Of a DNA stretch of 64,000 nucleotides, positions 12,409-64,000 are shown piece by piece. Location of the stretch: positions 124,001 to 188,000 of the IMG/VR virus record IMGVR_UViG_3300023175_000005. The stretch is one strand, 5' to 3'. The first letter of the stretch is position 1; each line of letters starts with the position of its first letter. The notes under the pieces were generated by a model. That model made no database searches and had not been told where the DNA came from. It saw nothing but the letters and a program-made list of their open reading frames with translations. The translations under genes were made by a program, and so were the position numbers.

Positions 12409-12414
12409 TAAATA
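12409..12414 (+). promoter_or_regulatory. T4-like late promoter motif TAAATA at the head of the enzyme cluster
   Basis: TAAATACGTAC in the intergenic gap, followed by AGGAG RBS and ATG 12442. Confidence 0.55.
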
Positions 12415-12441
12415 CGTACATTATTATGTAGGAGTATCCGT

Positions 12442-12789
12442 ATGGACGATCGTCTTGAACAAGCAATAGATTCTGCCAATTTTTTAATTACATTAGAAAA
12501 TACAAAACGCATATTGAAAGAGCAATATAAAGAATCTTTGGTTTGCTATCATAACAAAGGACAATTTAGTATTAGCATGGAACTTATAAGTTATTTGCAA
12601 ACACTAATAGGCATGAATCAAACAGAAACTGTTCTAATTGACGATCACGATATTCCTATTCAAATCGAAAATTTAAAACTTTTTGTTTTAGAAGTAATGA
12701 ATCAATTTTATAATGCAAACAACAAATATCTTATAGAGTATAACAAACTTGTTAAAAAGAGGTCAACAAAGGATATTGTAGAAGTATGA
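12442..12789 (+). CDS. Hypothetical protein
   Basis: 115 aa ORF with strong RBS; ATGA overlap with the next gene. Confidence 0.7.
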   Translation: MDDRLEQAIDSANFLITLENTKRILKEQYKESLVCYHNKGQFSISMELISYLQTLIGMNQTETVLIDDHDIPIQIENLKLFVLEVMNQFYNANNKYLIEYNKLVKKRSTKDIVEV

Positions 12790-13637
12790 GCAAAGGTGTC
12801 CTCTTTATTGCAAGAAACAATAAAGAAATTAACTATCTTTACCAAGCAGTGTTCAATGCACACAGAGTACACAAATATTTAGGTGTACCTGTTTCGATAA
12901 TTACAGATAACAAAGAATATTTAGAAACACGATTCGATAGTCATCCTTTTGAACATGTTATAGAAATTCCAAACGATCAAGATTATGGATATAGAAAATA
13001 CAATGACGGAACGTATTCTAAAAGAAATTTAGAATGGAAAAACACTTCACGGGCAAAAGCATACGACCTTTCTCCTTACGAAGAAACACTATTATTAGAT
13101 ACAGATTATATAATTGCAAATAGTTTGTTAAAAGATTGTTTTAACCAATTACATGATTTTTTAATTTATAAGGATAGTGTTGAACTTAGTGGATGGAGAG
13201 ACGTATCAGAATTTGAATTATGTAGTGACAAGACAATAGATTTTTATTGGGCAACTTGTGTATATTTTAGAAAAAGTCCTGACAACAAACGGTTCTTTGA
13301 TCTGCTTCATCATATATCAGAGAATTGGGAACATTATAGAAACTTGTACCAAATTAAAAGTGCAATTTTTCGTAATGATTATGTTTTTAGTGTTGCAATA
13401 CACATAATGAATGGACATTATAAAAACGGGTTTGCAAAAACTTTACCTGGTAAATTGTTTTATACAATTGATAGAGATTTGCTTATTGACATTGATGGCG
13501 ATGATTTTTTATTTTGTTTAGAGAAAAAAGATAGTTTTGGTAATTACATGCCATTGAGAATGAGAGGTTCTAATGTACATGTAATGAATAAATTTAGTTT
13601 AACGAGAGCAATGTATGTCCCAGAATTCAAAGATTAA
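12786..13637 (+). CDS. GT-A fold glycosyltransferase-like protein (GT8-like)
   Basis: SPYEETLLLDTDY DxD motif, A..V....PVSIITD N-terminal strand pattern and RND motif. Confidence 0.65.
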   Translation: MSKGVLFIARNNKEINYLYQAVFNAHRVHKYLGVPVSIITDNKEYLETRFDSHPFEHVIEIPNDQDYGYRKYNDGTYSKRNLEWKNTSRAKAYDLSPYEETLLLDTDYIIANSLLKDCFNQLHDFLIYKDSVELSGWRDVSEFELCSDKTIDFYWATCVYFRKSPDNKRFFDLLHHISENWEHYRNLYQIKSAIFRNDYVFSVAIHIMNGHYKNGFAKTLPGKLFYTIDRDLLIDIDGDDFLFCLEKKDSFGNYMPLRMRGSNVHVMNKFSLTRAMYVPEFKD

Positions 13638-14469
13638 TTTTACATTGTTTGCACAAAATACAGATGTTGATTATGTTCAGCAAGCATGTCTTTGCGCAAT
13701 GAGTATTAAAAATTCAAATCCGAACAGTTCTATTTGTTTGGTAACAAATGATGTTGTGCCTGATAAGTATCAAAATTTATTTGATTATATAAAAGAAATA
13801 CCTTGGGGAGATGCTGCACAAGGACAAGAATGGAAGATTCATAATCGCTGGAAATTATACCATGTTACTCCGTATGATAATACAATTGTATTAGATGTTG
13901 ATATGCTTGTGCTAGACGACATTAGCCGTTGGTGGGAATTTTTACAAACAAAGGAATTATTTTTTACATCAAATGTAAGAACATATAGAAATGATATTGT
14001 CACAAGTAGATTTTATAGGCCAGCATTTGATAAATTTTATTTGCCAGATACTTATGTGGGATTTTATTATTTTAAAAAATCTGATCTAGCACACACTTAT
14101 TTTAAATGGCTCGAACTAGCAGTTAATAATTGGGAAAAGTTTCAAGGAGATTTTGCAGGAGGCAAATACTATCAGCGTGTAGCAAGTATTGACATGCTGA
14201 CTGCAATAATTATAAAAATTCTTGGAATCGAAAACGAAGTCACCTGCAAAGTTAGAGATTATCCCCATTTTACACATATGAAGTTACATTGCCAAAATTG
14301 GACTAATGTTAAAGTAGACAGTTGGCAAAAGTATGTAGGCACATATCTTACAAATGACGGTAAATTAAAAATAGGCAACTATTTCCAACAAGGTGTCTTT
14401 CATTATACAGAAGATGACTTTGTAAACGATAGAATTATAAACATATATGAAAAGCTTGTAGGAGTTTAA
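13615..14469 (+). CDS. GT-A fold glycosyltransferase-like protein (GT8-like), paralogue of the previous gene
   Basis: TPYDNTIVLDVDM DxD motif, AMSIK...ICLVT, FTHMK and C-terminal FHY. Confidence 0.65.
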   Translation: MSQNSKINFTLFAQNTDVDYVQQACLCAMSIKNSNPNSSICLVTNDVVPDKYQNLFDYIKEIPWGDAAQGQEWKIHNRWKLYHVTPYDNTIVLDVDMLVLDDISRWWEFLQTKELFFTSNVRTYRNDIVTSRFYRPAFDKFYLPDTYVGFYYFKKSDLAHTYFKWLELAVNNWEKFQGDFAGGKYYQRVASIDMLTAIIIKILGIENEVTCKVRDYPHFTHMKLHCQNWTNVKVDSWQKYVGTYLTNDGKLKIGNYFQQGVFHYTEDDFVNDRIINIYEKLVGV

Positions 14470-15048
14470 ATGTTACAAATATCTACTAACAAATTTATTT
14501 ACTTTGATGAAAATGGAGAACTTTTATCTGTTAGCAATACTAACGCAGAAGAAGGGAACTGGATTGAAGTAGACATTGATGCAGTTAAAGATATTTTAGA
14601 TGCAAAGGATTCTATGACAAATTATAGTGTTGCATTTGATAGCACTACAAAAAAATATGAACTAAAGCATAAACTTATAGCAGTAGACTTCAATACTGAT
14701 ATATGGTATGACATTTTTGAAATACCAATTACAGAAAAAGCAGATGTAATTGTTACACAAGATTGTAAAAATAAAGAATGGTTATTTGAACTAGATCCTA
14801 TGATAGTAAAAGAAACAAAATCTAAAGACTCTTTTTATAACTTTCCTATGCAATTCTCGATCACAGAGTTTAATGATCCTCATAATTTATTGCAGTTTAT
14901 TAAGTTTGGCTTTAGAGATTTGATAGAAGAAAATGTAGTAAAAGTTGCGTTTGATGATAATTTTAAGGTAGACAAAACTGACATAAGTGTGTATACTATT
15001 AAAAAATTCGATACCTATTGTCGGAGAACGGTGAATGAGCAAATTTAA
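14470..15048 (+). CDS. Hypothetical protein
   Basis: 192 aa acidic ORF abutting both neighbours; no recognised motif. Confidence 0.65.
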   Translation: MLQISTNKFIYFDENGELLSVSNTNAEEGNWIEVDIDAVKDILDAKDSMTNYSVAFDSTTKKYELKHKLIAVDFNTDIWYDIFEIPITEKADVIVTQDCKNKEWLFELDPMIVKETKSKDSFYNFPMQFSITEFNDPHNLLQFIKFGFRDLIEENVVKVAFDDNFKVDKTDISVYTIKKFDTYCRRTVNEQI

Positions 15049-15976
15049 AATACTAGACTATGACATTATCTATCTTAGTTATGACGAACCTAATGCTGAA
15101 AAAAACTATGCAGATTTGTGTAGGAAAATTCCTTGGGCTAAACGTGTACACGGTGTAGACGGAAGTGATGCAGCACACAAGGCATGTGCAGAACTTTCAG
15201 AGACGGATAGATTTATTACTATCGATGGCGATAATATTATTGATTCTGAGTTTCTTACAAAAGAATATGATTTAGAAACACACGAAGACATGCACTGGAA
15301 TCGTGATATAAAGTTTGAAGACTGTGTAGTAAGTTGGAGTGCTAGAAATACAATTAACGGACTAATGTACGGTAACGGCGGTATTAAATGCTGGCCTAAA
15401 GATAAAGTGTTAAACATGCGTACACACGAAAATGCAGATCCTAATAATGCACATGCTCAAGTTGATTTTTGTTGGGACTTAGAATATATTCAAATGAATG
15501 CGTGTTATAGCGAAATTATGAATAATGCTACTCCGCAGCAAGCATGGCGTGCTGGATTTAGAGAAGGTGTCAAAATGGCACTTGACAGAGGTATGAAACC
15601 TACTTTGAATGATTTTAAACGTAATCATTGGAAGAACTTGCATCGTTTGTATATTTGGCTAATGATAGGCGCTGATGTAGAAAATGGTAAATGGGCTATT
15701 TACGGCGCAAGAGAAGGTCTTTATAAAACAATGTGTACGGATTGGGACTTTGTAAATGTTCGTGATTTTAAATGGTTAAATGAATATTGGGCAAATGAAG
15801 TTGAATCTAAAGTATCTTTAGAAGGACTTGAAGATTCAATTGAGGAATATGGTATTAAACTAATTAACGAACTCGATTTACCTATTGCTGAAGAATGCTT
15901 AACTGCACAACAAAGTAATTTTTTCAAAACAGTATATCAAAATCCGGGTAGAACTGCTGGACAACAATTTATATGA
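15035..15976 (+). CDS. GT-A-like glycosyltransferase
   Basis: DIIYLSYDEPNA..N, RVHGV.G...AH..., FITIDGDN (DxD), YG.GG.K and AW.A.FRE..K. Clear paralogue of the C-terminal domain of 31720-34284. Confidence 0.6.
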   Translation: MSKFKILDYDIIYLSYDEPNAEKNYADLCRKIPWAKRVHGVDGSDAAHKACAELSETDRFITIDGDNIIDSEFLTKEYDLETHEDMHWNRDIKFEDCVVSWSARNTINGLMYGNGGIKCWPKDKVLNMRTHENADPNNAHAQVDFCWDLEYIQMNACYSEIMNNATPQQAWRAGFREGVKMALDRGMKPTLNDFKRNHWKNLHRLYIWLMIGADVENGKWAIYGAREGLYKTMCTDWDFVNVRDFKWLNEYWANEVESKVSLEGLEDSIEEYGIKLINELDLPIAEECLTAQQSNFFKTVYQNPGRTAGQQFI

Positions 15977-17355
15977 AATCAGAAACAGATAGAATTAAAG
16001 AAGCCGCTAGTATAATGGAGGATGTAAGTCCGACATTCTGTTTGGCTAAGTGGCATCATACTACAATTTATTTACACACAGGTGATACACACAGTTGCTA
16101 TCATCCGTCGCCGCATAAGATTGATTTAGAAGAAATTAAAAACAATCCTAGTGCATTGCACAATACACTTACAAAGAAAAAAGAACGTGCAAAAATGCTT
16201 GTAGGTGAAAAACCTAAAGGCTGTACCTATTGCTGGAATGTCGAAGCACTAGGAGATGATCATATTTCTGATAGAAACATTCGTAATGAAAGTATTTACA
16301 AGCCTGAGCGATTACAAGAAATTGTAGATTCGCCTTGGGATTTTGACGTAAATCCAGAATATATCGAAATTGCATTTAGTAATGAATGCAATTTTAAATG
16401 TGGATATTGTTCACCTATGGCAAGTAGTAGCTTTTATAACGAAGTCAAAAAACATGGTCCGTATGATATGGTTAAAAATCATCGATGCGATGTTGATTGG
16501 TTTCAGCCTATGGAAGAAGGATCAAATCCTTACGTAGATGCATGGTGGAAATGGTGGCCTGAAGTAAGTAAGACACTAAACATTTTACGCATTACAGGCG
16601 GTGAGCCTCTTATGCATAAAAGCACATGGCGTATATTTGACGAACTTAAAGAAAATCCACGTCCTCATATTGAACTTAACCTCAATAGTAACATGGGTTT
16701 AAGTCCACGCATTGTGTCTAAGTTTGCCGATAATGTAAAAGAACTTTTAGAAGGTAACAAAATTAAAAAGTTTAAAGTATATTCTAGTATAGATACATTT
16801 GATAATCGTGCAGAATATCTTCGCACAGGTTTAGATGTAAATCTTTGGGAAAGTAATATGAAAAACTTTTTAAATATTACTGGCTCCGATTTAACAATCA
16901 TGTGTACGTTTAATATTCTTAGTGTTACAAGTTTTAATTTATTCCTACAAAAAGTTTTAGATTGGCGTAAAGAATTTTATGATCCTAAGCGTAGACGTAT
17001 TAGATTTGATACACCTTATCTAAAAGAACCGTTACAATATGATATGCATATTTTACCTAAGGATGAATTTTTGCCTTACATGGATAAAATTTTACAATTT
17101 ATTAATGACAATAGAGACGACAAAGACACTACGAAATTTAGTGATTTAGAATATGAACGTTTTCGTAGAGTAAGAAATTATTTTGCAAATGTTAACTATG
17201 ACGAACCGAGAGTAAAAGAAGGCAGAGCAGATTTTTACAATTGGTTTAATGAATATGATGTTAGAAGAAACGTTAATTTTTTAGAAACATTTCCTGAGAT
17301 GGAAGGGTTTTATAATTTATGTAAGCAAACTAAGGATGAACTAGAAGTTGTCTAA
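15973..17355 (+). CDS. Radical SAM protein with N-terminal twitch-like Fe-S domain
   Basis: CNFKCGYC and TGGEPL. N-terminal C.AKW...G.THSCYH...C.YCW. Confidence 0.85.
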   Translation: MKSETDRIKEAASIMEDVSPTFCLAKWHHTTIYLHTGDTHSCYHPSPHKIDLEEIKNNPSALHNTLTKKKERAKMLVGEKPKGCTYCWNVEALGDDHISDRNIRNESIYKPERLQEIVDSPWDFDVNPEYIEIAFSNECNFKCGYCSPMASSSFYNEVKKHGPYDMVKNHRCDVDWFQPMEEGSNPYVDAWWKWWPEVSKTLNILRITGGEPLMHKSTWRIFDELKENPRPHIELNLNSNMGLSPRIVSKFADNVKELLEGNKIKKFKVYSSIDTFDNRAEYLRTGLDVNLWESNMKNFLNITGSDLTIMCTFNILSVTSFNLFLQKVLDWRKEFYDPKRRRIRFDTPYLKEPLQYDMHILPKDEFLPYMDKILQFINDNRDDKDTTKFSDLEYERFRRVRNYFANVNYDEPRVKEGRADFYNWFNEYDVRRNVNFLETFPEMEGFYNLCKQTKDELEVV

Positions 17356-18190
17356 TTTGTTTTGTTACGGGTGCAGTTTTACAAATTACAGTTGGCCTAT
17401 GTATCCTGAATACTTGGCACAGGAGTTTGATAAAACATTTAATTGTGGATTATCTGGTTTAGGTAATTTTGCAATATATCATAGATTACTAGGCACTGTT
17501 TTAGAAAACAAAATTAAAGAAAATGATACTGTAATTGTTCAGTGGTCAGAGCCATCAAGGCATGATTACCTTGACAAAGAAGAAGAATGGTCTAATATTG
17601 GCGGCGGCTTAGCCTTAGAACTAACTGCAAAAAGATTAGATCATATTATATCTCATAGTTCGTCTTACGTTAAAACTTTGACATATATGTTTCATACAGT
17701 TAACTTACTTGAATCTTTAAAAGTTAACTGGACTTTTCTTTTTCTTACACCAGATGCAATGGCACACCTAAGTATTCAAAGAGGTAAACATATAGATTTA
17801 GCAGGACATCAAAAACGCATAGCACAAAATATGACGAACAAAGTTAACAAGTATCGTCATAAGTTTATCGAGTTACCATTAATGCATCACTTTAATCATA
17901 AAGATCCTGTGTTTATGACAAATCATGGTGGCAATTGGTGGGATGACCATCCTAGACCTAAATCAACATATAAATTTGTAAAGGAAGTTTTAGCACCAAA
18001 ATTACAAATTAATACTAATAATATAACTAGTTACAACAAATATGTTTGTAACAGAATATTTGTACCTGTAAAAGAAAGAACATACAATCAAGAATTTATG
18101 ATTGAAGCAATGCGTGAGTTACCTGACAATCTCAAGTATAGTTATGATATAAGTGAATTAATAAATGAAACAATTGATATGGGCATATAA
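17348..18190 (+). CDS. SGNH/GDSL-like hydrolase or acyltransferase
   Basis: GCSFT (block I), G.GN (block II), QWS..R.D and DDHP (block V). TTG start. Confidence 0.55.
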   Translation: MSNLFCYGCSFTNYSWPMYPEYLAQEFDKTFNCGLSGLGNFAIYHRLLGTVLENKIKENDTVIVQWSEPSRHDYLDKEEEWSNIGGGLALELTAKRLDHIISHSSSYVKTLTYMFHTVNLLESLKVNWTFLFLTPDAMAHLSIQRGKHIDLAGHQKRIAQNMTNKVNKYRHKFIELPLMHHFNHKDPVFMTNHGGNWWDDHPRPKSTYKFVKEVLAPKLQINTNNITSYNKYVCNRIFVPVKERTYNQEFMIEAMRELPDNLKYSYDISELINETIDMGI

Positions 18191-26891: not shown

Positions 26892-26898
26892 ATATTGC

Positions 26899-30178: not shown

Positions 30179-30196
30179 TTATAAAAAGGATTTCGT

Positions 30197-56957: not shown

Positions 56958-57703
56958 CCCTTAACAAAAAAATGTTTATTGATTTAGACGAAATTATACA
57001 AGTTGAAAAGTGTCCAGATATAACAGATATGATTGTGGATAGTGTGAATCATATCAGACACAACTGTAATATTAGAACTTTTGATCTCAAAGGAAATCAA
57101 ATTAAAGATGCTTGGTATGCAAAACAGATATTAGACTGTGACCTTAAAGATAATAAAAAAATATTACAAGCAGAACTAAAACATGGTGTTAGAAGTCCTT
57201 ACTATGTATTAGCATTAAGAGAAGGTGGTCATGATAGTTATGTCTACGATTCGATAAACACAGATGATAATGTGTGGAAGAAGATAAAGTGGAAAGAAGA
57301 TTTAAAAGACACTTTTGCCCCTCTAATAGAATATATAGAATCTTTACCTTTAGATAGAATAGGTCATTGTAGTTTTTTTATAAACAGACCAGACATTATT
57401 CCTTGGTATCATGTCGATAGTGGCACAGACGACGAACTAGAAACGTGGAAACCGAAACCACACAGAGAAGAGTTTATATGGATAAACTTTAGCTCGGACA
57501 AAACATTTTACGTCTTAGACGAAAAGGTACCTGTTCCAATAACATCTAGAAGTGCTTTTTTTAACACAAACAACTATCATGGATCGCACGAAAGCACACC
57601 GAGGTATTCTTTCAGTTTACGTATTGAATGCGTTTTTTCGGAAAAATTAAGACAACAAATGGGAATTGCTCATTTAGAAAGGTACTATTACGAAAATGTA
57701 TAA
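56945..57703 (+). CDS. Fe(II)-dependent oxygenase-like cupin protein
   Basis: YHVD...EFIW...FN...YHG.......S.R pattern. Confidence 0.5.
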   Translation: MEKLTLNKKMFIDLDEIIQVEKCPDITDMIVDSVNHIRHNCNIRTFDLKGNQIKDAWYAKQILDCDLKDNKKILQAELKHGVRSPYYVLALREGGHDSYVYDSINTDDNVWKKIKWKEDLKDTFAPLIEYIESLPLDRIGHCSFFINRPDIIPWYHVDSGTDDELETWKPKPHREEFIWINFSSDKTFYVLDEKVPVPITSRSAFFNTNNYHGSHESTPRYSFSLRIECVFSEKLRQQMGIAHLERYYYENV

Positions 57704-57720
57704 CAATAACGAGATATTTT

Positions 57721-58719
57721 ATGTCGACTAAATTATTTGATTCTTTTGTGCATGATTTTTTAGAATGGAGCAAAACAAGTGTTGAACCAAAAAATGCTTG
57801 TCCATTTGCAAAAACTTCACGTGTCAAAAATCAAATACAATTTTTAGATGGCAGTTCTAATTTTGATGTTATTAAAGATTGGGATTCTTCTAAAGAAATG
57901 GGTGTGGTGTATCTTGGACAAGATGTAGACAAAGAAATAATAATGGAAAAAATATATAAAGCAAGGGCTAACGATCCTAGTAAAGTTTTTTTCTACACTG
58001 CACCTATTAAAGGAGTAAAAGATAATAATCCCTTTCAGTGTATAATAATTCATAATAAAAAAGAATTTATGTTGAAACAGCGTATTTTATACGAAAAAGG
58101 AGACTATTATAAAAATTATCCAGGAGAAAAATTAGACAAATTTATAAGTGTCTATCCAATAACAAAAACAACAAAGCAAAAAATTGGAACTGCAAAGCAA
58201 GGTAAAGTATTCCAACATTATTTTAAAGGACAAGGTAGTGTTTTAGATATTGGAGGCGCAGCAGGTAATTTATTATACTATGTACCTATAGCACAATACA
58301 CATGTATAGATGTAAATGAAAAAGCAATCAAGTTAGGTAAAGAAATTTATCCTGAGCATAATTTTATACATTGGAATAGGTACAACAGATACTATAATAA
58401 AACAGGATATGCTCTTTTGGAGTTTCCAAAAGTCAGTCCACATGATTTTACATTTGTTAACAGTGTTTTTACCAGTTGTGATCACGACACTATAATGCAC
58501 ATAATGTCAAATATTCTTAAAATAACAAATAAAAAAGTTGTTTTTAGTGTATTTGATTATAACAACAAAGAATTAAAAAACAAGTTAGGAAATGCTGTAA
58601 ATTATCATGACGTATTTAAATTAAAAAATGTTTTAGAATTTGAATTTAAAATAGATTGTAAAGTTTATAATCCTTGTAGTATAGATAATAATTTTGCAGT
58701 GTTTAGTATAGAAAGGTAA
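57721..58719 (+). CDS. Fusion of a CPFA-motif domain and a class I SAM methyltransferase
   Basis: N-terminal ACPFAK..R...I homologous to 47906. C-terminal SVLDIGGAAGN, Y..IDV and SVFT. Confidence 0.65.
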   Translation: MSTKLFDSFVHDFLEWSKTSVEPKNACPFAKTSRVKNQIQFLDGSSNFDVIKDWDSSKEMGVVYLGQDVDKEIIMEKIYKARANDPSKVFFYTAPIKGVKDNNPFQCIIIHNKKEFMLKQRILYEKGDYYKNYPGEKLDKFISVYPITKTTKQKIGTAKQGKVFQHYFKGQGSVLDIGGAAGNLLYYVPIAQYTCIDVNEKAIKLGKEIYPEHNFIHWNRYNRYYNKTGYALLEFPKVSPHDFTFVNSVFTSCDHDTIMHIMSNILKITNKKVVFSVFDYNNKELKNKLGNAVNYHDVFKLKNVLEFEFKIDCKVYNPCSIDNNFAVFSIER

Positions 58720-58721
58720 AC

Positions 58722-59639
58722 ATGTATAACAATCCTCTTAATAAATTAATTTGGGATAAAGTGCAAGAAATGTTTTATTGGAACATTGCACCAGAATCTC
58801 CAATATGCCAATTGCCGTTTACACAAGAATTTATTGACGCATGTGAACAAGAATTTTCAATGACTGTTCGTGATATGCATTATCCTATTTCCTTAGGAAA
58901 AGTTGATCAATGGTTTGGTAAACGTATGCAAGATTTTGTAAAAGAAATTGACGCACAATATCAGCACAATTATTTTGTCGGAGAAAATGGAACTAGCACA
59001 ACTGGTGTAGTAGGAACTATATATGATGTTGACGAAAAACCTATTACAAACAAATGGAATATTAGAGGACAAGCACTTGTAGACAGATTACAGGCTATGC
59101 AAAAAGAAAATCCTAATTTAACAATTTTAGATATGGGTTGCGGAGTTAACGAATACAAAAAACATTTGAATAATGTTACTGGAGTTGATCCGTATAGAGA
59201 AGAAGCAGATATTTTGTCCAAGCAAAGTGATTTTATTACGCAAGGTAAAACTTGGGATATAATCATTTGCTTTGGCCCACAGAATTGGTATACTTACGAT
59301 GAACAATTTAGAAACTTCAAAAAACTCAAAGAATGTTTGGCACCGGGCGGGTTACTTTTGTGGTCGCACGTACATCACTATTATAAAGTATTTCAGCCCG
59401 ATCATCTTTATGCGCACACTTGGATACACGGAGACATGGATCATGCTCAACGTAATAGTGCTTTTTATTTTTATGATCGCGATTGGAAATATACTTGGTA
59501 TTTCAATTGGACCGAACATGCCGTAGAAACACTTGCTAAACATGTAGGACTGTCTATTGATAAAGTAGATTATGATCATTGTAATTTATATAGACCGCCT
59601 ATGTATAGAATATTTGTGGAGATGACACATGAAAAATAG
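58722..59639 (+). CDS. Class I SAM-dependent methyltransferase with small N-terminal helical domain
   Basis: ILDMGCG.N, GVDP, D.IIC.G and L.PGG. Confidence 0.7.
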   Translation: MYNNPLNKLIWDKVQEMFYWNIAPESPICQLPFTQEFIDACEQEFSMTVRDMHYPISLGKVDQWFGKRMQDFVKEIDAQYQHNYFVGENGTSTTGVVGTIYDVDEKPITNKWNIRGQALVDRLQAMQKENPNLTILDMGCGVNEYKKHLNNVTGVDPYREEADILSKQSDFITQGKTWDIIICFGPQNWYTYDEQFRNFKKLKECLAPGGLLLWSHVHHYYKVFQPDHLYAHTWIHGDMDHAQRNSAFYFYDRDWKYTWYFNWTEHAVETLAKHVGLSIDKVDYDHCNLYRPPMYRIFVEMTHEK

Positions 59640-60198
59640 ATGGGACGTAACAGTAGCAGCGTCTAATTATCATTGGGATCCTAACGCAAACGATAGCAAT
59701 ACTATTAGAATAATAAGTAATGTGTTTGATGAATGGAATGATGAAATCGAACGTGCTATAGAATTACAAAAACCTGTTATTAGTGACGGAACAATCGAAA
59801 AGCACATATCTGCCGGAACGCACATGTATAACGGAGTTATAGTTGATACTACAGAATTTCCAATACTCGGTAGTATCGGTAAAAAACTAGGATTTGAAGA
59901 ATATAATACAAGTATTCAAACACAAACTACTGGAATGACAACTCCATTGCATATAGATTCATCTTCTGGAGATAAAGAAAGAGTTATTGTTATGCTTCAA
60001 GACTGGTACTGGGGACAAATACTTCAATTTGGTAATATAGTATTACATAATTGGAAAGCAGGGGATGTATTATATTTTAGTATCAATGGTACACCGCATA
60101 GTACAGCAAATTTAAGTCCACATAGTAGAACTATAGCAAAAATTACAGGACGCACAACAGATGCATTTGAAAAATTATTAAAGGGAGAGTCTCAGTGA
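59629..60198 (+). CDS. Fe(II)/2OG oxygenase-like cupin protein
   Basis: Q..G....LHID...V.L.DW..G...QFG......W.AGD.......PHSTAN.....R...ITG. Confidence 0.6.
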   Translation: MKNRWDVTVAASNYHWDPNANDSNTIRIISNVFDEWNDEIERAIELQKPVISDGTIEKHISAGTHMYNGVIVDTTEFPILGSIGKKLGFEEYNTSIQTQTTGMTTPLHIDSSSGDKERVIVMLQDWYWGQILQFGNIVLHNWKAGDVLYFSINGTPHSTANLSPHSRTIAKITGRTTDAFEKLLKGESQ

Positions 60199-60222
60199 AA
60201 AATAGATGGGACGTAACAGTAG
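59630..60222 (+). repeat. 27-bp exact direct repeat at the starts of the two tandem paralogues
   Basis: TGAAAAATAGATGGGACGTAACAGTAG at 59630-59656 and 60196-60222. Confidence 0.9.
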
Positions 60223-60857
60223 AACAAAGTAATTATGATTTTAATCCGTTTAGAGAAAGTGATCATGGCAAAAGCTTTAGAACAGTAGGAAATATAGAAC
60301 CTACATGGAAAGATGAAATACCTATTGCAAATGCTAATCAATACGACTTTTATTGGCCTTCGCCTGTGTCTCCAGAAGGCGACAGTTTTAATTATGACTA
60401 TGAAGAATTGCTTTGCAAGGATTGGGGTATACCTTTAGACTTTGTTGTATACAGACAGTGGACAACAACGGATGAAACACCAATACTAAACAGTCTAGCC
60501 GAACAAATCGGTTTAGAAAATGCACAAACAAATATTCAAACTCAACATACAGGAATGATGCTACATTTACATATAGATAGTTTAACTGGTTTACGAAAAG
60601 AACGTACAGATCAAACAAGTAGTAGAGCAACAGACGATGAATGGGGTAGATGCTTTGTAATGCTTGATGATTGGGCACCTGGACATATTATTCAATTTGG
60701 TAATACCTACGTACCACCTTGGCATGCAGGAGATGTAATTTGGTTTGATTGGGCAAACATACCACATAGCACTGCTAACACTGGACCATGGCCTAGAAAC
60801 ATTGCAAAAATTACAGGTAAAGTTACGCAAAGGTATAAAGAGTTTGTTGGAATCTAA
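60195..60857 (+). CDS. Fe(II)/2OG oxygenase-like cupin protein; tandem paralogue of the previous gene
   Basis: Same motifs (LHID, DW..G...QFGN, W.AGDV, PHSTAN, AKITG) and the same N-terminus KNRWDVTV; GTG start. Confidence 0.6.
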   Translation: MKNRWDVTVEQSNYDFNPFRESDHGKSFRTVGNIEPTWKDEIPIANANQYDFYWPSPVSPEGDSFNYDYEELLCKDWGIPLDFVVYRQWTTTDETPILNSLAEQIGLENAQTNIQTQHTGMMLHLHIDSLTGLRKERTDQTSSRATDDEWGRCFVMLDDWAPGHIIQFGNTYVPPWHAGDVIWFDWANIPHSTANTGPWPRNIAKITGKVTQRYKEFVGI

Positions 60858-61953
60858 ACCTAGTTGTTGGTTTGCTTATAAAGGTTTATCTGTAGATTCT
60901 ACAGGCAATCTAAATCCTTGCGGCCATAGCACTTATAAGTTTGGAAAATTTACTGACTACAACTCTTTGAATGTTGACAGAACAAATGCTATAAAAGATT
61001 TTGATCAACATGTTCCGAAAGGGTGCATTTCTTGTACAAATAGAGAAGTGAGAAACGAACAAAGTAGACGTTTATATCATTACGATTGGTTCAGTCAACA
61101 GGTAAATTTTGATATAGAATTTTTAGATATTGATATAGGTAATCTATGCAATCTCAAATGTAGAATGTGTAATCCTGGACAGTCGTCTAGTTGGATAAAA
61201 GATGGACACCTTAAAGATAAAGTTGATTTTACGTTAGACGATTTTGATAATAATAAGATTCTTGATAATATAAATGGCGATATGATAAAATTTTTATCTA
61301 GTTTAGATTCTTTAAGGTATATTATTATAAAAGGTGGAGAACCTTTTATGCATCCAAGATTCTTTGAGTTTATAGAATGTATTCCAAACAAGCATAACGT
61401 AAAATTACAGATTATTACCAATGGCACACATAAATTGACTAAAGATGAAAAGAGATTGTTTGCTAAATTTGATAAACTGAATATTTTCTTTTCAGTAGAA
61501 TCTGATGGAGAGATGTATCAATACATTAGAGGCGGAAAATTTACATTTGAAGAATCATTAGATAATTGGAAATCTTACAAAACGTTTCCTAATGCAAATG
61601 AAATTGGATGGATTTATACTGCAAACATTTATGGTATCTATAATTTTGATAGTTTACAGAGTAAAATAGAAAACTCTATTGATTTTGGACATCAAGTTCT
61701 TGATCCTATGTATTTGAATCCGTTGATTACACCTTTACATATAAAACAAAAAATATTAGAAACTACAAACTATTCTCATTGGAAAAAATATTTTGCAACT
61801 AGTGCAACAGATTTGTTTGGTATAAGCATAGACAAACAATACAAACTTTTATGCAATTTGTATTCTTACACAACAACATTAGATAATATTAGAAGACAAC
61901 ACCTTTTAGATGTAGAGCCCAGGTTTGAGTGGATTTATGAATACAACAAATAA
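60844..61953 (+). CDS. Radical SAM protein with N-terminal twitch domain
   Basis: C...Y......G...PC...C.SC...E.....S.R; CNLKCRMC; GGEPF. Start uncertain (TTG 60844/60847). Confidence 0.83.
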   Translation: MLESKPSCWFAYKGLSVDSTGNLNPCGHSTYKFGKFTDYNSLNVDRTNAIKDFDQHVPKGCISCTNREVRNEQSRRLYHYDWFSQQVNFDIEFLDIDIGNLCNLKCRMCNPGQSSSWIKDGHLKDKVDFTLDDFDNNKILDNINGDMIKFLSSLDSLRYIIIKGGEPFMHPRFFEFIECIPNKHNVKLQIITNGTHKLTKDEKRLFAKFDKLNIFFSVESDGEMYQYIRGGKFTFEESLDNWKSYKTFPNANEIGWIYTANIYGIYNFDSLQSKIENSIDFGHQVLDPMYLNPLITPLHIKQKILETTNYSHWKKYFATSATDLFGISIDKQYKLLCNLYSYTTTLDNIRRQHLLDVEPRFEWIYEYNK

Positions 61954-61972
61954 TTAGTGTATAGGAGAAGGT

Positions 61973-62716
61973 ATGATTGAAAAAGGCGTTACAATAGATT
62001 TACACGGAACCAAAAGAATTGGTATGAAATTGTCAGGTGGACCTGACAGTGCAATGATTCTTTATATGATTTGTAAAAAAATAACTGATGAGAATATAGA
62101 TATTGAATATATTCAACCAATTACTGCTACAGCAGATGTTAAACCATACAATATAAAATTTGCCAGAAGAGTAATTGAATGGATGCGAAATAGATATCCT
62201 AATATTGAAATCAAAGATACACATTGTGCTGTATGCAGATATGAAGAATATAATTCTCGACAAGAAGAATTAGTAAGGGATTTAATTTTAAACAGAGATA
62301 TTGATATTACATTTGCAGGAATTACAGCAAATCCTCCCGATGAAAAAGGCAGGAATTTTTGGCCTTGCAATCCTAAATACACTAGAGCAATTGAATTAGA
62401 CTTTGACGAGCATCCTGAAGACATTTCAAATGCAGATTGGAATACAAGAGCAGTTGAAAGAGACGAACCTGATGTCGAAGTTTATTGGTCTACTTGGAGA
62501 GGCAAGGACGAAAAAGTTCCAATGGTAAGACCTTTTATTAATCATGATAAAAGGAAAGTAGCAGAATTATATCATCACTACGATATTATGGAATTGTTTG
62601 ATATAACAAGATCTTGTGAAAACAGAGATGGTCCTGCGCTAAACGATTTCGAAGATCATTGCGAAACAGAATGTTGGTGGTGCTATGAACGTAGATGGGC
62701 CTTTGGGCGAGTTTAA
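61973..62716 (+). CDS. QueC-like PP-loop ATP pyrophosphatase
   Basis: LSGGPDSA PP-loop, PF...DK and TRSC...HC...CWWC.ER.WAF Zn-binding motif. Strong AGGAG RBS. Confidence 0.7.
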   Translation: MIEKGVTIDLHGTKRIGMKLSGGPDSAMILYMICKKITDENIDIEYIQPITATADVKPYNIKFARRVIEWMRNRYPNIEIKDTHCAVCRYEEYNSRQEELVRDLILNRDIDITFAGITANPPDEKGRNFWPCNPKYTRAIELDFDEHPEDISNADWNTRAVERDEPDVEVYWSTWRGKDEKVPMVRPFINHDKRKVAELYHHYDIMELFDITRSCENRDGPALNDFEDHCETECWWCYERRWAFGRV

Positions 62717-63620
62717 GTATACAGGCTGGCACATTGAACTAACAAACAGATGTCCACTAGCATGTCCTGCATGTATTAGAACTATGCACGGGCCTGGTTC
62801 TAAGTCAGACATTGATACTAAATTACTTCTCAACTTTTTGCCTAATCCTGAAAAATATGATTACATATTTTTTCAAGGTAATTTGGGAGATCCTATATAT
62901 CATCCTGATTTCCACAAAATTTCAGAACATTTTTTCCCAGCAAATGAATTACAAGTTACAACAAATGGAATGCAAACAAAAGAGTTTTGGCAAAGAGTGC
63001 TAGAAACATGGCCCGAGTCTAGTATTGTTGAACTTAGTATAGACGGCCTACAAGACACTAATAGCATATACAGAGTTAACAGTAATTGGAACAAAATACA
63101 AGAACTTTTTGAACTTATAGCAACTACTAAACGCAAATGTCAGATTATATGGAAGTATATTGTTTTTGAACACAATCATCATCAAGTTGAAGAAGCAATA
63201 GCCTTAAGTAAAAAAATAGGCATGAATGAATTTAAAATTAAAAAAAGTTGGACTATACATGATGACATGTCCAATAATGGCCAAGTTAAAGACTATTATA
63301 ATCCAGAATGGTTTGATTATGTAAAAAGAGAAACACTTGACGAATTAGCACCTTTCTGTTATACTGGAGACATGCATTATATAAATTCGCAAGGTAACTA
63401 TTATCCTTGTTGTTGGATAGATAACGACATAAGTTCTGTAGGACACATATCAGAAGGTTTAGATAGTATTAAAGATAAATTTTTAAACTTTAGTAACTTA
63501 TTAATTTGGAGTAAATGTCCTAAAGTATGCAGAAAAATGTGTTGTAAAATTAGTGATAACGATAAAGAAATGATTACACCTAACAACGTTGTTGATAGAA
63601 AAATAATAGTAAATGATTGA
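62685..63620 (+). CDS. Radical SAM protein with C-terminal SPASM/twitch domain
   Basis: CPLACPAC, GNLGDP..HP, TTNG and SIDG. C-terminal C......I...G..YPCCW...C...C...C. Confidence 0.85.
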   Translation: MNVDGPLGEFKYTGWHIELTNRCPLACPACIRTMHGPGSKSDIDTKLLLNFLPNPEKYDYIFFQGNLGDPIYHPDFHKISEHFFPANELQVTTNGMQTKEFWQRVLETWPESSIVELSIDGLQDTNSIYRVNSNWNKIQELFELIATTKRKCQIIWKYIVFEHNHHQVEEAIALSKKIGMNEFKIKKSWTIHDDMSNNGQVKDYYNPEWFDYVKRETLDELAPFCYTGDMHYINSQGNYYPCCWIDNDISSVGHISEGLDSIKDKFLNFSNLLIWSKCPKVCRKMCCKISDNDKEMITPNNVVDRKIIVND

Positions 63621-64000
63621 ATTAGGAATTTGGAGTGGTATCGGTTTACTAACTGGTCTTTTAGCCGGGTTAGTGCCAGGTGCTGGTCCATTTGTTGCTA
63701 TTGGTGTCTTATACCCGTTTTTAGCGTCAACTAGTGCGGTTAATATTATGGCGTGTTATGTTGCTATACTCATTACCACTAACTATACTAATAGTGTTAC
63801 AGCAATCTTATACGGTATACCCGGAGATGCTACTGCAATTAGCACAGCAAGATACGGACATAAAATGTTTCAAAAAGGCGCAGGCGGCCTTGCTGTAACA
63901 AGTAACGCAATTAGTAGCACCGTTGGTGTAGCATTTGCAATGTGTTTGTTTTTAGTTGCCTTGCCTAGTATTATGCATGTATTCAAATTTTATAACAGTA
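63613..64000 (+). CDS. tctA: Tripartite tricarboxylate transporter permease TctA family; 3'-truncated by the window edge
   Basis: Not in the ORF track. My translation is MIELGIWSGIGLLTGLLAGLVPGAGP...Y.NSVTAILYGIPGD.....T...GH.M...G....A....A.SS..G, matching the TctA N-terminal signature. Confidence 0.75.
   Translation, partial: MIELGIWSGIGLLTGLLAGLVPGAGPFVAIGVLYPFLASTSAVNIMACYVAILITTNYTNSVTAILYGIPGDATAISTARYGHKMFQKGAGGLAVTSNAISSTVGVAFAMCLFLVALPSIMHVFKFYNS

Follow-up and report, generated by a model that had tools for sequence, protein, structure and literature searches.

An island of radical-SAM and predicted sugar-tailoring genes in the tail-fibre module of an uncultured marine jumbo phage

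An operon-like run of about 54 kb, with about 55 enzyme genes including 17 radical-SAM enzymes, 7 glycosyltransferases and many tailoring enzymes, lies inside the tail-fibre module of an uncultured ~250-kb marine jumbo phage, and is the largest example so far of a hypervariable island already noticed in other large phages. Its product, as inferred from sequence alone, is most likely a heavily edited sugar chain put on a target inside the infected cell. The virion or fibre proteins are the most plausible target, although this assignment is tentative. The window analysed was a stretch of 64,000 nucleotides (IMG/VR record IMGVR_UViG_3300023175_000005, positions 124,001 to 188,000). The observation made in the initial annotation, a co-directional block of more than 51 kb composed almost entirely of enzyme genes downstream of tail and baseplate genes, was confirmed. 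From 12442 to 63620 there are 50 plus-strand ORFs of at least 100 aa, followed by a partial ORF, and 43 of the 49 junctions overlap, with only one gap exceeding 30 nt (35180-35385). The initial annotation missed a conserved 75-aa ORF and the continuation of the block for about 2.8 kb past the window, to about 66.8 kb in window-equivalent coordinates. The features of the region, all on the plus strand, are as follows.

1..4112 (+): g01, C-terminal part of a giant (~4,800-aa) virion structural protein, the 'VrlC-like' left border of the island; in the sequence L005 the ORF continues unbroken for more than 4,608 aa, it matches phrog_10938 (virion structural protein) at E 4e-268, and it starts after position 9407 of the sequence L292, downstream of a baseplate wedge gene.
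4124..12402 (+): six fibre-module genes, g02-g07, with three tail-fibre paralogues sharing N-termini, one carrying a Collar domain (Pfam; PHROG tail fibre/collar families), and the g06/g07 pair; gene order conserved in about 80 relatives.
12409..12415 (+): TAAATAC promoter-like motif, 27 nt upstream of the g08 start codon.
12442..15976 (+): conserved head module g08-g12, with a small 115-aa protein, two GT8-like GT-A enzymes (g09, g10), g11 without an assigned function, and g12, a SunS/ThuS-like GT-A with a helical C-domain; syntenic in all relatives and in genes 354-350 of Ralstonia phage RsoM2USA.
15973..17355 (+): g13, an N-terminal-twitch radical SAM (NF033640 score 316 bits) that almost always follows g12, as in most of the ~80 relatives and in RsoM2USA gene 349.
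17348..25719 (+): g14 (SGNH-like, motif only), g15, g17 and g19 (GT-B glycosyltransferases, g19 being double), g16 (NAD epimerase/dehydratase) and g18 (B12-radical SAM, KedN5-like but below the cut-off).
25716..30177 (+): putative amino-/guanidino-sugar cassette, with g20 (UDP-Glc/GDP-Man dehydrogenase), g21 (2OG oxygenase), g22 (DegT-type aminotransferase), g23 (amidinotransferase) and g24 (SGNH-like, motif only).
30197..31720 (+): g25, an N-terminal-twitch radical SAM (NF033640 score 302 bits) and close paralogue of g13 (34% identical).
31720..34284 (+): g26 (core), five to six ~110-aa degenerate pseudo-GT repeats, visible in the sequence, followed by a g12-like GT-A domain; its C-terminal 220 aa are 34% identical to g12, and the GT domain is conserved in phages (43-75%) and in Bdellovibrionota (40-49%).
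34271..35179 (+): g27, a conserved core protein present in relatives, RsoM2USA and Bdellovibrionota, with no Pfam or PDB hit.
35166..35393 (+): the conserved 75-aa ORF, overlapping the end of g27 and the start of g28; 67-82% identical in 25 or more phage-type loci, always between the g27 and g28 homologues, and absent from the Bdellovibrionota loci.
35386..36453 (+): g28 (core), a radical SAM with a C-terminal SPASM-like domain (Pfam, NCBIfam), the most conserved enzyme of the island.
36450..38170 (+): g29 (DUF6071, SGNH-like) and g30 (2OG-like by motif only).
38167..43993 (+): radical-SAM array g31-g36, with N-twitch g31, g34 (core) and g36, C-SPASM type g32 plus the separate SPASM ORF g33, and g35; the g32/g33 split is kept in a 96% strain, which lacks g35.
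44020..47949 (+): cassette of g37 (amidinotransferase), g38 (N-twitch radical SAM), g39 (PLP-aminotransferase-like) and g40 (2OG-like motif).
47906..51779 (+): g41 (no assigned function; shares a domain with the g51 N-terminus), g42 and g43 (N-twitch radical SAMs) and g44 (stand-alone radical SAM; core).
51751..57703 (+): g45 and g49 (B12-radical SAMs, KedN5-like below the cut-off), g46 (peroxiredoxin/redoxin), the paralogues g47/g48 (2OG-like motif) and g50 (2OG-like motif); g49-g50 are absent and g48 is replaced in the 96% strain.
57628..59639 (+): g51 and g52, class-I methyltransferase-like.
59629..60857 (+): g53/g54, paralogous Fe(II)/2OG-type oxygenases, 36% identical to each other.
60745..63620 (+): g55 (N-twitch radical SAM), g56 (PP-loop ATPase-like, weak QueC/NAD-synthase hits) and g57 (radical SAM, C-SPASM type).
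63613..64000 (+): start of a TctA-family membrane transporter gene, followed outside the window (sequence L115, 10929-14150) by a signal-peptide binding protein, a 173-aa protein and a 213-aa 2OG-like protein, after which the strand switches.

That the contig might be chimeric or cellular at ~12.4 kb had been named beforehand as a way in which the observation could fail, but the block is phage DNA. GC content is 0.31-0.39 and GC skew is positive throughout, with no compositional break at 12.4 kb. A baseplate wedge, a baseplate hub and the ~4,800-aa virion protein lie just upstream on the same contig, and the junction recurs in many independent assemblies and in the cultured phage RsoM2USA, which has g08-g13, g26 and g27.

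The enzyme content claimed in the initial annotation was largely, but not entirely, recovered. Pfam finds Radical_SAM in exactly 17 ORFs, and although four of them (g25, g35, g36 and g57) score below the Pfam cut-off, these are secured by NF033640 scores or by paralogy; each of the 17 has a single intact CX3CX2C motif. Nine belong to the N-terminal-twitch family NF033640, passing its cut-off of 170 bits. The roughly seven GT-like genes became seven glycosyltransferase genes of three kinds. The family profile of g09 and g10 hits glycogenin (GT8) at E 2.6e-5. The AF2 model of g12 (pLDDT 86.5) has a predicted GT-A fold whose top PDB matches are ThuS/SunS, the g26 C-terminal domain is its paralogue, and the g12 family has at least 8,000 90%-identity clusters. 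The AF2 model of g15, searched with Foldseek, has a predicted GT-B fold, and g17 and g19 are its paralogues. Both NDP-sugar enzymes, g16 and g20, were found by Pfam. Of the two PLP enzymes, g22 is DegT-like by Pfam, whereas g39 is only weakly supported, its profile hitting fold-type-I aminotransferases at E 0.01. Of the two amidinotransferases, g23 has a weak ADI Pfam hit but is 41% identical to the annotated amidinotransferase of cyanophage S-SCSM2R and 34% identical to that of Campylobacter phage CP220 (gp086), and g37 is its paralogue.

For other claims the support is thinner. Among the three SGNH-like proteins, only g29 has a Pfam match, to DUF6071, while g14 and g24 rest on a motif. Of the three methyltransferase-like proteins, g52 passes the Pfam cut-off (Methyltransf_23), g51 gives a weak hit (Methyltransf_31), and g27, methyltransferase-like by eye only, has no support. 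Only 3 of the ~8 claimed 2OG oxygenases have more than motif support. Pfam supports g21; g53 and g54 give weak profile matches, but only to 2OG dioxygenases, the best being AtsK at E 0.002, and have an invariant HxD...H, and g53 is 34% identical to a 2OG protein of S-SCSM2R. In contrast, g30, g40, g47, g48 and g50 show an HxD...H motif only, with no Pfam hit even at E<=10, and hhalign shows no link to g21 for any of these five or for g53/g54.

The promoter-like motif at the start of the block is real. TAAATAC also precedes the fibre genes g02 (4110) and g05 (8703), and three of its five plus-strand copies lie in short intergenic spacers; it occurs 11 times in the window against 25 expected. 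TATAAATA occurs once against 13.6 expected, upstream of g06. However, this is a sequence observation only, and that the motif is a late promoter is an assumption.

Comparison with relatives indicates a conserved part and a variable part. g12 is 66-81% and g28 up to 89% identical in relatives whose fibres are about 35-50% identical, while the downstream content differs from contig to contig and the 96% strain differs by whole cassettes. The order of the g37-g40 cassette is found in 5 of 5 more distant contigs (L272-L276), and radical-SAM/aminotransferase/amidinotransferase cassettes recur. Part of the core (GT-A, g27 and three radical SAMs) is shared with Bdellovibrionota chromosomes. There, homologues of g28 (33 of 38 loci), g34 and g44 (32 of 38 loci, 57-68% identical), with g12/g26 and g27 in a minority of loci, are embedded among GT2s, a carbamoyltransferase and an acetyltransferase (GNAT). 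Moreover, one Bdellovibrionota protein (L153) is a natural fusion of a g12/g26-type GT-A domain to a g34-type radical SAM.

The interpretation offered in the initial annotation, a dedicated phage pathway that builds and heavily tailors a glycan, most plausibly on the virion, is supported in part. The glycan pathway is supported by the glycosyltransferases, the NDP-sugar enzymes and the Bdellovibrionota loci. The phage origin and the position directly downstream of tail/baseplate genes are also supported, whereas the virion as target is favoured but not shown. In our tentative view the block is an entirely cytoplasmic glycosylation-and-editing pathway, probably starting at the promoter-like motif and probably read as one long operon. 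The conserved core (g09/g10, g12, g26, g27, the 75-aa ORF and the radical SAMs g13, g28, g34 and g44) would put a sugar or short glycan on a conserved acceptor, and a strain-variable set of cassettes would then extend and edit it. GT-B enzymes would add sugars, with building blocks supplied by the NDP-sugar dehydrogenase and the epimerase/dehydratase. The N-terminal-twitch radical SAMs would abstract hydrogen from unactivated sugar carbons, giving BtrN-like oxidation or epimerisation, a chemistry assigned only by analogy with BtrN and NeoN; the resulting keto groups would be aminated by the DegT/PLP enzymes and the amines converted to guanidines by the amidinotransferases. B12-radical SAMs and class-I methyltransferases would methylate, 2OG oxygenases would hydroxylate, SGNH-type enzymes would add or remove acyl groups, and the peroxiredoxin and the TctA/binding-protein pair would support the chemistry. 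The most likely acceptor would be a phage protein made at the same time and encoded around the island, that is, the tail fibres or another virion surface protein, so that progeny would carry a strain-specific, probably cationic glycan coat. The gene content, enzyme families, conservation pattern, phage origin and absence of membrane glycan-assembly genes are established by the analysis, but the order of reactions, the chemistry of the N-twitch enzymes, late expression and, above all, the acceptor are inferred.

Modification of DNA or of the host envelope had been named as alternatives to the virion. A cytoplasmic acceptor is favoured because every enzyme is soluble and no Wzx/Wzy/Gtr-type membrane protein is present, TctA being the only predicted membrane protein and the binding protein carrying the only signal peptide. 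A link to the virion is suggested by the position of the island between the baseplate, giant protein and fibre genes on one side and an Mtd_N fibre-like gene on the other, and by the motif shared with fibre genes and depleted elsewhere. Moreover, the best fold matches of g12 are the peptide S-glycosyltransferases ThuS/SunS, followed by protein O-GTs, and glycogenin is a protein-priming GT8. However, GT-A, GT8 and GT-B folds do not determine the acceptor class, and TM-scores to SunS/ThuS are low (0.35). It must also be taken into account that the homologous Bdellovibrionota cluster works without any virion; its occasional adjacency to a Peptidase_S74 fibre gene (3 of ~45 loci) seems, on a rough estimate of how many fibre genes these genomes carry, no more than chance would give. 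In S-SCSM2R the related cassette lies among auxiliary metabolic genes, not fibres, and the transporter and periplasmic binding protein in the operon point to some interplay with the envelope. Finally, cultured relatives with the same baseplate (Atu_ph07, SCTP-2 and PA5oct) gave no tblastn hit for g09, g12, g23 or g34, and the island is therefore not needed for this virion architecture.

The uniqueness implied in the initial annotation, which contrasted the block with characterised systems using a handful of enzymes, was too strong, since smaller versions are already in the literature. What is new here is the assignment of nine enzymes to NF033640, the core shared with Bdellovibrionota, the recurrence of the cassettes and the absence of membrane glycan-assembly genes. 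Pelagimyophage "host recognition clusters" contain GT8s, UDP-Glc dehydrogenase and radical-SAM cassettes (PMC7029224), and a T4-like marine genome has 12 radical SAMs (PMC5332604). Campylobacter phages CP220/CPt10 have 11-12 radical SAMs and an interchangeable radical-SAM/amidinotransferase module (PMC2853527), and cyanophage S-SCSM2R carries a smaller version in ORF301-310 (PMC12801897). The g21-g24 segment parallels CP220 gp080-089 and S-SCSM2R ORF305-309, and g22 and g23 are 37% and 41% identical, respectively, to the adjacent S-SCSM2R ORF305/309.

All sizeable ORFs of the window lie on the + strand and were numbered g01-g57. GC content is 0.31-0.39 and GC skew is positive throughout, with no compositional break near 12.4 kb. 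Neither a tRNA gene nor an Rfam family match was found in the window. The features referred to below are:
1-4112 (+): g01, the C-terminal quarter of a single ORF of roughly 4,800 codons
246-12402 (+): g01-g07, structural genes
12442-63620 (+): g08-g57, the enzyme cluster proper
31720-33600 (+): N-terminal two thirds of g26, with tandem repeats
35166-35393 (+): conserved 75-aa ORF
39492-40416 (+): g32/g33, a radical SAM of the C-SPASM type split into two ORFs
47906-48388 (+): g41, a stand-alone domain shared with g51
53597-54184 (+): g46, peroxiredoxin/redoxin
57628-58200 (+): N-terminus of g51
63613-64000 (+): start of a TctA-family transporter gene

Genes g03-g05 share N-termini and hit tail-fibre and collar PHROGs, and g03 has a Pfam Collar domain. 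On the IMG/VR copy of the same phage (L005, 41-13867) the reading frame of g01 stays open for more than 4,608 codons; it matches phrog_10938, "virion structural protein", at E 4e-268, and it lies between a baseplate wedge gene and the fibres (on contig L292, from ~9,420). The cluster proper has 50 ORFs, and 43 of its 49 junctions overlap. The only real gap (35180-35385) in fact holds the 75-aa ORF, which was missing from the initial annotation. This ORF overlaps the end of g27 and the start of g28, is 67-82% identical in 25 or more related phage loci, and may encode a small partner subunit of the radical SAM g28.

The observation made in the initial annotation, a long co-directional run of mostly overlapping genes dominated by enzymes, is confirmed. 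The Pfam Radical_SAM domain (PF04055) is found in 17 ORFs, as had been claimed, and each of them has exactly one CX3CX2C motif for the SAM-binding [4Fe-4S] cluster. Thirteen of the 17 score above the gathering cut-off of 29.5 bits, whereas g25 (24.7 bits), g35 (24.4), g36 (29.0) and g57 (25.8) are below it; of these, g25 and g36 pass NF033640, and g35 and g57 are clear paralogues of g28. All-against-all BLAST and NCBIfam sort the 17 into four groups. Nine belong to the N-terminal-twitch family NF033640 (N_Twi_rSAM), with whole-protein scores above the curated cut-off of 170 bits: g13 316, g25 302, g31 234, g34 416, g36 253, g38 227, g42 229, g43 404 and g55 176 bits. In g31, g34, g38, g43 and g55 the Pfam SPASM hits fall at residues ~7-97, ahead of the Radical_SAM domain, and three N-terminal Cys residues are invariant in all nine (C13, C94 and C97 of g34). 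No characterised member of this family was found in the literature searched. A second group (g28, g32 with its SPASM piece g33 as a separate ORF, g35 and g57) has a C-terminal SPASM-like domain, on the basis of paralogy and Pfam. The third (g18, g45, g49) combines a B12-binding domain (PF02310) with PF04055, both above their cut-offs, but reaches only 255, 192 and 177 bits against the 700 required by the KedN5 family NF033712, so that these are relatives and not members. The singleton g44, like g28, g35 and g57, matches NF033640 only partially (35-67 bits) and is not a member. In g32/g33 the core ORF and the overlapping +1-frame SPASM ORF lack about 50 linker residues; the split is kept in a ~96% strain, so it is not an assembly error, and a TAAATAC copy lies at 40045, 57 nt upstream of g33.

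Seven glycosyltransferase (GT) genes are supported. The profile of the g09/g10 family hits glycogenin-1 and -2 only (19 sequences, best E 2.6e-5), which are GT8 enzymes, and D105 and D107 are invariant, although Pfam Glyco_transf_8 itself was not hit at E<=0.01. An AlphaFold model of g12 (pLDDT 86.5) is a predicted GT-A domain followed by a helical domain. Its best PDB matches by Foldseek are the glycocin S-glycosyltransferases ThuS and SunS (E 7e-5, probability 1.0, but with a TM-score of about 0.35 and 10-12% identity), and then cellulose synthase BcsA, followed by wall-teichoic-acid (RmlT) and protein O-GTs. The C-terminus of g26 is a g12 paralogue; the rest of this protein holds five to six tandem repeats of ~110 aa that look like shortened copies of the g12-type GT-A domain with the DxD motif lost, while RsoM2USA and Bdellovibrionota homologues have only the catalytic domain. 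The g15 family has no sequence-level PDB match, but a model of g15 is a GT-B fold, and g17 and the double-module g19 are its paralogues. No sequence-level PDB match was found for g27 either.

Among the other classes, g16 and g20 are NDP-sugar enzymes, g22 is DegT-like, g23 and g37 are amidinotransferase-fold proteins, g29 matches DUF6071, g52 passes the Pfam cut-off as a methyltransferase and g51 is weak. The N-terminus of g51 shares with g41 a domain of ~135 aa (30% identity) with a conserved Cys-Pro-Phe-Ala motif, which stands alone in g41 and is fused to a methyltransferase domain in g51. The peroxiredoxin/redoxin g46 sits in the middle of an operon that mixes 17 oxygen-sensitive Fe-S enzymes with oxygen-dependent 2OG oxygenases, in a presumably aerobic and marine host. 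Other assignments are weaker. Of the eight 2OG oxygenases claimed in the initial annotation, only g21 is certified by Pfam, g53/g54 have weak but consistent profile hits to 2OG dioxygenases, and the remaining five (g30, g40, g47, g48 and g50) rest on an HxD...H pattern only: hhalign between shallow family alignments linked neither these nor g53/g54 to g21, and Pfam at E<=10 gave nothing for them. Similarly, g14 and g24 are SGNH-like only by an N-terminal motif, and g39 is only weakly PLP-like.

The DNA is of phage origin and the junction at about 12.4 kb is real. The window matches several IMG/VR contigs of 126-257 kb at 100% identity and a ~96% strain of 236 kb, and the same proteins occur in JGI and ENA assemblies. 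Upstream of the giant ORF the same contig encodes a 1,157-aa baseplate wedge, 32-36% identical over 95% of its length (E down to 4e-144) to the wedge proteins of Salicola phage SCTP-2, Agrobacterium phage Atu_ph07, Pseudomonas phage PA5oct and relatives, and an 830-aa baseplate hub/lysozyme. A search for the major capsid protein, which had been set as a check, was made by scanning viral contigs with the RsoM2USA capsid protein; it returned only RsoM2USA-like soil contigs, and thus it is the wedge and hub, rather than capsid or terminase, that were verified on the window's own contig. Past the window (contig L115, 10929-14150) the operon ends with the TctA membrane transporter, a 255-aa protein with a signal peptide (a TctC-like binding protein by eye), a 173-aa protein and a 213-aa protein with an HxD motif; import of a carboxylate such as 2-oxoglutarate for the oxygenases would be a guess. 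The strand then switches to a 658-aa Mtd_N protein (major tropism determinant type; L115 16078-18054, - strand, about 3.5 kb beyond the end of the block), DUF2201 with AAA_5, a 5'-3' exonuclease, a DNA methyltransferase and one more radical SAM/SPASM gene in the DNA-metabolism region, about 18 kb beyond the island (contig L184, 1369-2604). Fibre-type genes therefore flank the island on both sides, and the genome holds at least 18 radical SAMs. The order of fibres followed by g08-g12 is kept in about 80 divergent viral contigs and in the complete genome of the cultured Ralstonia jumbo phage RsoM2USA, whose genes 354-347 correspond to g08-g10, an ORF without tblastn hit in the place of g11, g12, g13, g26 and g27. 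No close relative was found among GenBank phages by megablast of the fibre region and of 22 kb of the cluster, and tblastn of g01 found nothing.

The island combines a conserved core with variable cassettes. In relatives whose fibres are only 35-50% identical, g12 is 66-81% identical and g28 up to 89%. The g12 family has at least 8,000 90%-identity clusters in metagenomes, all unannotated and none on a contig longer than about 190 kb. Downstream of g12 the content differs from contig to contig, and relatives carry different numbers of N-twitch radical SAMs and different mixes of g14, g15, g20, g22, g23, g26-g28, g34 and g44 homologues. The ~96% strain has the same order but lacks g35 and g49-g50, has another gene in place of g48 and a 54% identical g53. 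Moreover, sub-cassettes recur: g37 (amidinotransferase), g38 (N-twitch radical SAM), g39 (PLP-like) and, in two of them, g40 occur in this order in five of five more distant contigs, and the trio g21-g23 is paralleled in cyanophage S-SCSM2R ORF305-309 and in Campylobacter phage CP220 gp080-089. With regard to promoter-like motifs, TAAATAC sits about 27 nt upstream of g08, the same heptamer precedes g02 and g05, and it is depleted in the window (11 copies against 25 expected). TATAAATA occurs once against 13.6 expected, upstream of g06. Most + strand copies lie in the few intergenic spacers, which is the avoidance pattern expected of a real promoter element.

A cellular counterpart was also found. 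As an alignment of nine paralogues was too divergent to seed a genome scan, one genome per prokaryotic species was scanned with a narrower g34 alignment, which returned 63 loci, most of them from Bdellovibrionota at 55-62% identity, including megabase chromosomes and the isolate Bdellovibrio sp. HCB2-146. These loci also carry homologues of g28 (33 of 38), g44 (32 of 38), the g12/g26-type GT-A and g27 in a minority of loci, further N-twitch paralogues, and g39-, g56- and g45-like genes, with about 5 radical SAMs per 20 kb. They lie among GT2s, a carbamoyltransferase, an acetyltransferase and housekeeping genes (DnaG, AcrB). In one Pseudobdellovibrionaceae genome (locus L153, 3208-5373) a g12/g26-type GT-A domain (residues 1-221) is fused to a g34-type N-twitch radical SAM (residues 235-687), which is strong evidence that they act in one pathway. 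One locus (L183) has a Peptidase_S74 protein 6 kb away, but such adjacency to fibre genes occurs in only 3 of ~45 loci, which on a rough estimate seems no more than chance would give, and we do not count it as evidence. The 75-aa ORF and g08-g11 are absent from these clusters. Hits in MAGs of other phyla are on short contigs: contigs assigned to Crocinitomicaceae, Arcticimaribacter, Neisseriaceae, Gammaproteobacteria, Chloroflexota and Acidimicrobiaceae (L120, L121, L122, L155, L159, L161) carry the phage gene order, and L120, L122 and L155 also carry the phage-only 75-aa ORF. They look like phage contigs binned into bacterial MAGs, and the two Flavobacteriales bins at 88-89% identity may hint at the host. 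A literature search on Bdellovibrio and radical SAM found nothing relevant, and the same was true of jumbo phages with radical SAM and glycosyltransferases.

The reading in the initial annotation, a dedicated pathway that builds and tailors a glycan, most plausibly on the virion, is partly supported. The gene content and the Bdellovibrionota context support a glycan-building and glycan-editing pathway. The recurrent trio of twitch radical SAM, aminotransferase and amidinotransferase suggests conversion of sugar hydroxyls to ketones, then amines, then guanidines, which is the logic of aminocyclitol pathways, although this rests only on analogy with BtrN, BtrS and StrB1. Apart from TctA, no protein has membrane segments in a hydropathy scan, and no Wzx, Wzy, Gtr or initiating transferase is present, which argues against classical O-antigen conversion and points instead to a cytoplasmic acceptor. 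The position inside the fibre module, the promoter-like motif shared with fibre genes, the contrast between conserved priming enzymes and variable tailoring enzymes, and the protein- and peptide-GT neighbours of g12 and g09/g10 make a virion protein the most likely acceptor, but we hold this view only tentatively. Gene content, enzyme families, the pattern of conservation, phage origin and the lack of membrane glycan-assembly genes come directly from the data, whereas the acceptor (including a peptide or protein acceptor for g12), the order of the reactions, late expression, and the substrates, chemistry and auxiliary Fe-S cluster of the N-twitch enzymes are inferred.

The main alternative, which we consider possible but less likely, is that the enzymes make or alter the O-antigen or capsule of the infected cell, blocking superinfection or preventing progeny from sticking to debris, as proposed for the homologous islands of pelagimyophages (PMC7029224). 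GT8 enzymes, UDP-Glc dehydrogenase and DegT are typical of O-antigen loci, as is hypervariable content; a TctA transporter and a secreted binding protein sit in the operon; and the Bdellovibrionota homologues lie among GT2s and a carbamoyltransferase, as in surface-polysaccharide loci. However, Pfam and the hydropathy scan found among about 55 genes no Wzx, Wzy, ABC exporter, initiating polyprenyl-phosphate transferase, polyprenyl-phosphate GT, GtrA/GtrB, Gtr-specific GT or membrane O-acetyltransferase, and the high conservation of g12 and g28 implies a conserved acceptor although the fibres, and presumably the hosts, differ. In addition, if the motif shared with fibre genes marks late genes, as is assumed but not shown, remodelling would come too late to block superinfection. 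A free aminoglycoside-like or other pseudo-oligosaccharide metabolite acting on the host or on competitors seems more doubtful. Every enzyme class has a counterpart in aminoglycoside pathways (twitch radical-SAM dehydrogenase or epimerase, DegT-type aminotransferases, amidinotransferases, B12-radical-SAM C-methyltransferases, 2OG oxygenases and GTs), and the sets g21-g23 and g37-g39 for oxidation, transamination and amidino transfer, with g18, g45 and g49 as B12-radical SAMs, fit this pattern; the authors of S-SCSM2R annotated their cassette as antibiotic synthesis genes (PMC12801897); the size and gene number resemble a large biosynthetic gene cluster; and predatory Bdellovibrionota share the core. 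Nevertheless, Pfam detected no sugar-phosphate cyclase (no DHQ-synthase-like hit, as for 2-deoxy-scyllo-inosose synthase) or inositol-phosphate synthase, no kinase or phosphatase pair, no exporter and no self-resistance gene, with the caveat that about 20 ORFs have no Pfam hit, so that absence of a cyclitol-forming enzyme is not proven. TctA belongs to an importer family, a translation inhibitor would harm the phage's own protein synthesis, and the position is tied tightly and conservatively to the fibre module.

Hypermodification of phage DNA, to evade restriction and CRISPR or to help pack a 250-kb genome, is also unlikely. Phage GTs classically modify DNA, radical-SAM, PLP and amidino chemistry occur in thymidine and 7-deazaguanine hypermodification, g56 is a PP-loop ATPase with a weak QueC hit, and a conserved acceptor would fit DNA; moreover, Campylobacter phages that carry related cassettes have modified guanines, and a QueD-like gene lies 11 kb from the CP220 cassette. 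Yet within the block neither Pfam nor NCBIfam revealed a base-exchange enzyme (TGT/DpdA), dNMP hydroxymethylase, nucleotide kinase, aGPT-Pplase or TET/JBP domain; seven GTs of three kinds exceed any known DNA glycosylation, which reaches mono- to trisaccharide; the Bdellovibrionota homologues lie among polysaccharide-type genes; and the fold neighbours of g12 are peptide and protein GTs. Still less likely is a RiPP-like system in which the SPASM/twitch enzymes cross-link, epimerise or methylate a peptide or a virion protein, with glycosylation secondary. Such enzymes are typical peptide maturases, weak NCBIfam hits go to PapB, SkfB, CcpM and similar enzymes and, for the B12-radical SAMs, to RiPP C-methyltransferases, g12 resembles SunS and ThuS, and the 75-aa ORF directly precedes and overlaps the most conserved radical SAM. 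All matches to peptide maturases are, however, far below the family cut-offs, no protease, leader-peptide recognition domain or exporter was detected, and the abundance of sugar enzymes is unexplained by this reading. The 75-aa ORF, the one precursor candidate examined, is uniformly conserved along its whole length without a Cys-rich or hypervariable core and is missing from the Bdellovibrionota clusters that keep g28, g34 and g44, and we judge it an unlikely precursor. Finally, a chimeric or cellular contig from about 12.4 kb onward might be suspected from the cellular look of the enzymes and from relatives of g34 in MAGs of several phyla, but this is very improbable: the g07-g08 junction is present in at least eight IMG/VR contigs from different samples besides the JGI and ENA assemblies, the divergent relatives and RsoM2USA, composition is uniform across it, and phage genes flank the block on both sides.

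Radical-SAM-rich modules in large phages have been recorded since 2010 without any function being assigned, and given the abundance of the g12 family in ocean metagenomes, whatever this pathway makes is produced on a very large scale in the sea. If the product is a virion glycan, it would be the first phage glycosylation system that uses radical chemistry, it would add a new layer to host-range and phage-defence biology, and it would be a source of new sugar-editing enzymes, with nine paralogues of an uncharacterised family in one operon. A bolder possibility, which the data do not rule out but which we regard as unlikely, is that the N-twitch enzymes edit sugars at unactivated carbons after or during glycan assembly, oxidising or epimerising these positions and opening them to amination, guanidinylation and methylation. 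The phage and Bdellovibrionota clusters would then represent one shared system, not described before, in which two kinds of predators of Gram-negative cells build a strain-specific, radical-edited, probably cationic glycan on their attack apparatus (fibres or surface proteins) to control adsorption or evade recognition.

Among known systems, the host recognition clusters of pelagimyophages and cyanomyophages (PMC7029224) are likewise large hypervariable islands (mean 44.6 kb) inside the structural region, next to a giant VrlC-type gene, with tail fibres, GT8 glycosyltransferases, UDP-glucose dehydrogenase, radical-SAM cassettes and transport genes, and close genomes differ by radical-SAM cassettes. 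The present phage is larger (~250 kb) and its baseplate wedge groups with Atu_ph07, SCTP-2 and PA5oct; g01, g09, g12 and g34 have no tblastn hit in any GenBank pelagiphage or cyanophage; the enzymatic part alone is ~54 kb with 17 radical SAMs; and no gp14-type neck gene, the other boundary of those clusters, was recognised within 20 kb downstream by precomputed Pfam for all genes and by PHROGs for six. The published reading of host O-chain modification is not supported here, because membrane assembly genes are absent. The Campylobacter phages CP220/CPt10 (PMC2853527) are large myoviruses with 11-12 radical SAMs, in which a 10-12-gene module with five radical SAMs and an amidinotransferase differs completely in sequence between the sister phages while keeping its functions. 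The CP220 module also has two GT-A genes and lies next to the gp5/PAAR baseplate genes; g23 is 34% identical to gp086, and g32/g57-type radical SAMs are present. It is five times smaller, has no N-terminal-twitch members at detectable similarity and no g12, g26, g27 or g28 core, and its host is microaerophilic. In the cultured cyanophage S-SCSM2R (PMC12801897), ORF301-310 form a contiguous run of 2OG oxygenase, GTs, DegT-type enzyme, radical SAM, GT, 2OG oxygenase, amidinotransferase and GT2, with homologues of g22, g53 and g23 at 37%, 34% and 41% identity, but with ten genes, one radical SAM and a location among auxiliary metabolic genes rather than fibres; as a cultured phage it is a usable test system. 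The cultured 255-kb Vibrio phage K566 (OZ196521.1, 161548-165950) has three adjacent radical-SAM genes, one of them distantly related to g34 (21% identity), and is another possible laboratory handle. The Bdellovibrionota clusters share the g34, g28 and g44 types but are cellular, and their GTs are mostly GT2.

In virus-encoded virion glycosylation, as for chlorovirus PBCV-1 capsid glycans, Mimivirus/Megavirinae fibril glycosylation clusters and mycobacteriophage capsid/tail glycosylation, soluble GTs, NDP-sugar-modifying enzymes, aminotransferases and methyltransferases act in the cytoplasm on virion proteins, and the clusters are clade-specific and variable; none is known to use radical-SAM enzymes, amidinotransferases or B12 methylases, and they have a handful to about a dozen genes (more in some giant viruses). 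Aminoglycoside/aminocyclitol pathways (BtrN, BtrS, StrB1, GenK/GenD1, NeoN, AprD4) use the same chemical toolbox, and the order of twitch radical-SAM oxidation, PLP transamination and amidino transfer would explain the recurrent trio cassettes; the B12 enzymes score best against KedN5, a sugar C-methyltransferase family, albeit below its cut-off. However, no cyclitol-forming enzyme, resistance gene or exporter was detected here, and the twitch domain is N-terminal rather than C-terminal. SunS and ThuS, which have a GT-A domain followed by a helical domain, are the best structural matches of the g12 model, in which the same architecture is predicted, but only at a TM-score of about 0.35 and 10-12% identity, and no glycocin-like precursor or exporter is present.

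The phenomenon has thus been seen before, in the host recognition clusters, in CP220/CPt10, in the S-SCSM2R cassette and in a T4-like marine genome with 12 radical SAMs (PMC5332604), none of which has a demonstrated function. This window is the largest and most elaborate example that we could find, and it lies in a different jumbo-phage lineage. To these systems our analysis adds the family identity of the enzymes, a small conserved core, the link to Bdellovibrionota and the argument against membrane-based glycan assembly, by which classical O-antigen conversion, the most cited explanation, is removed as the default, and it names RsoM2USA, CP220, S-SCSM2R and Bdellovibrio sp. HCB2-146 as cultured carriers.
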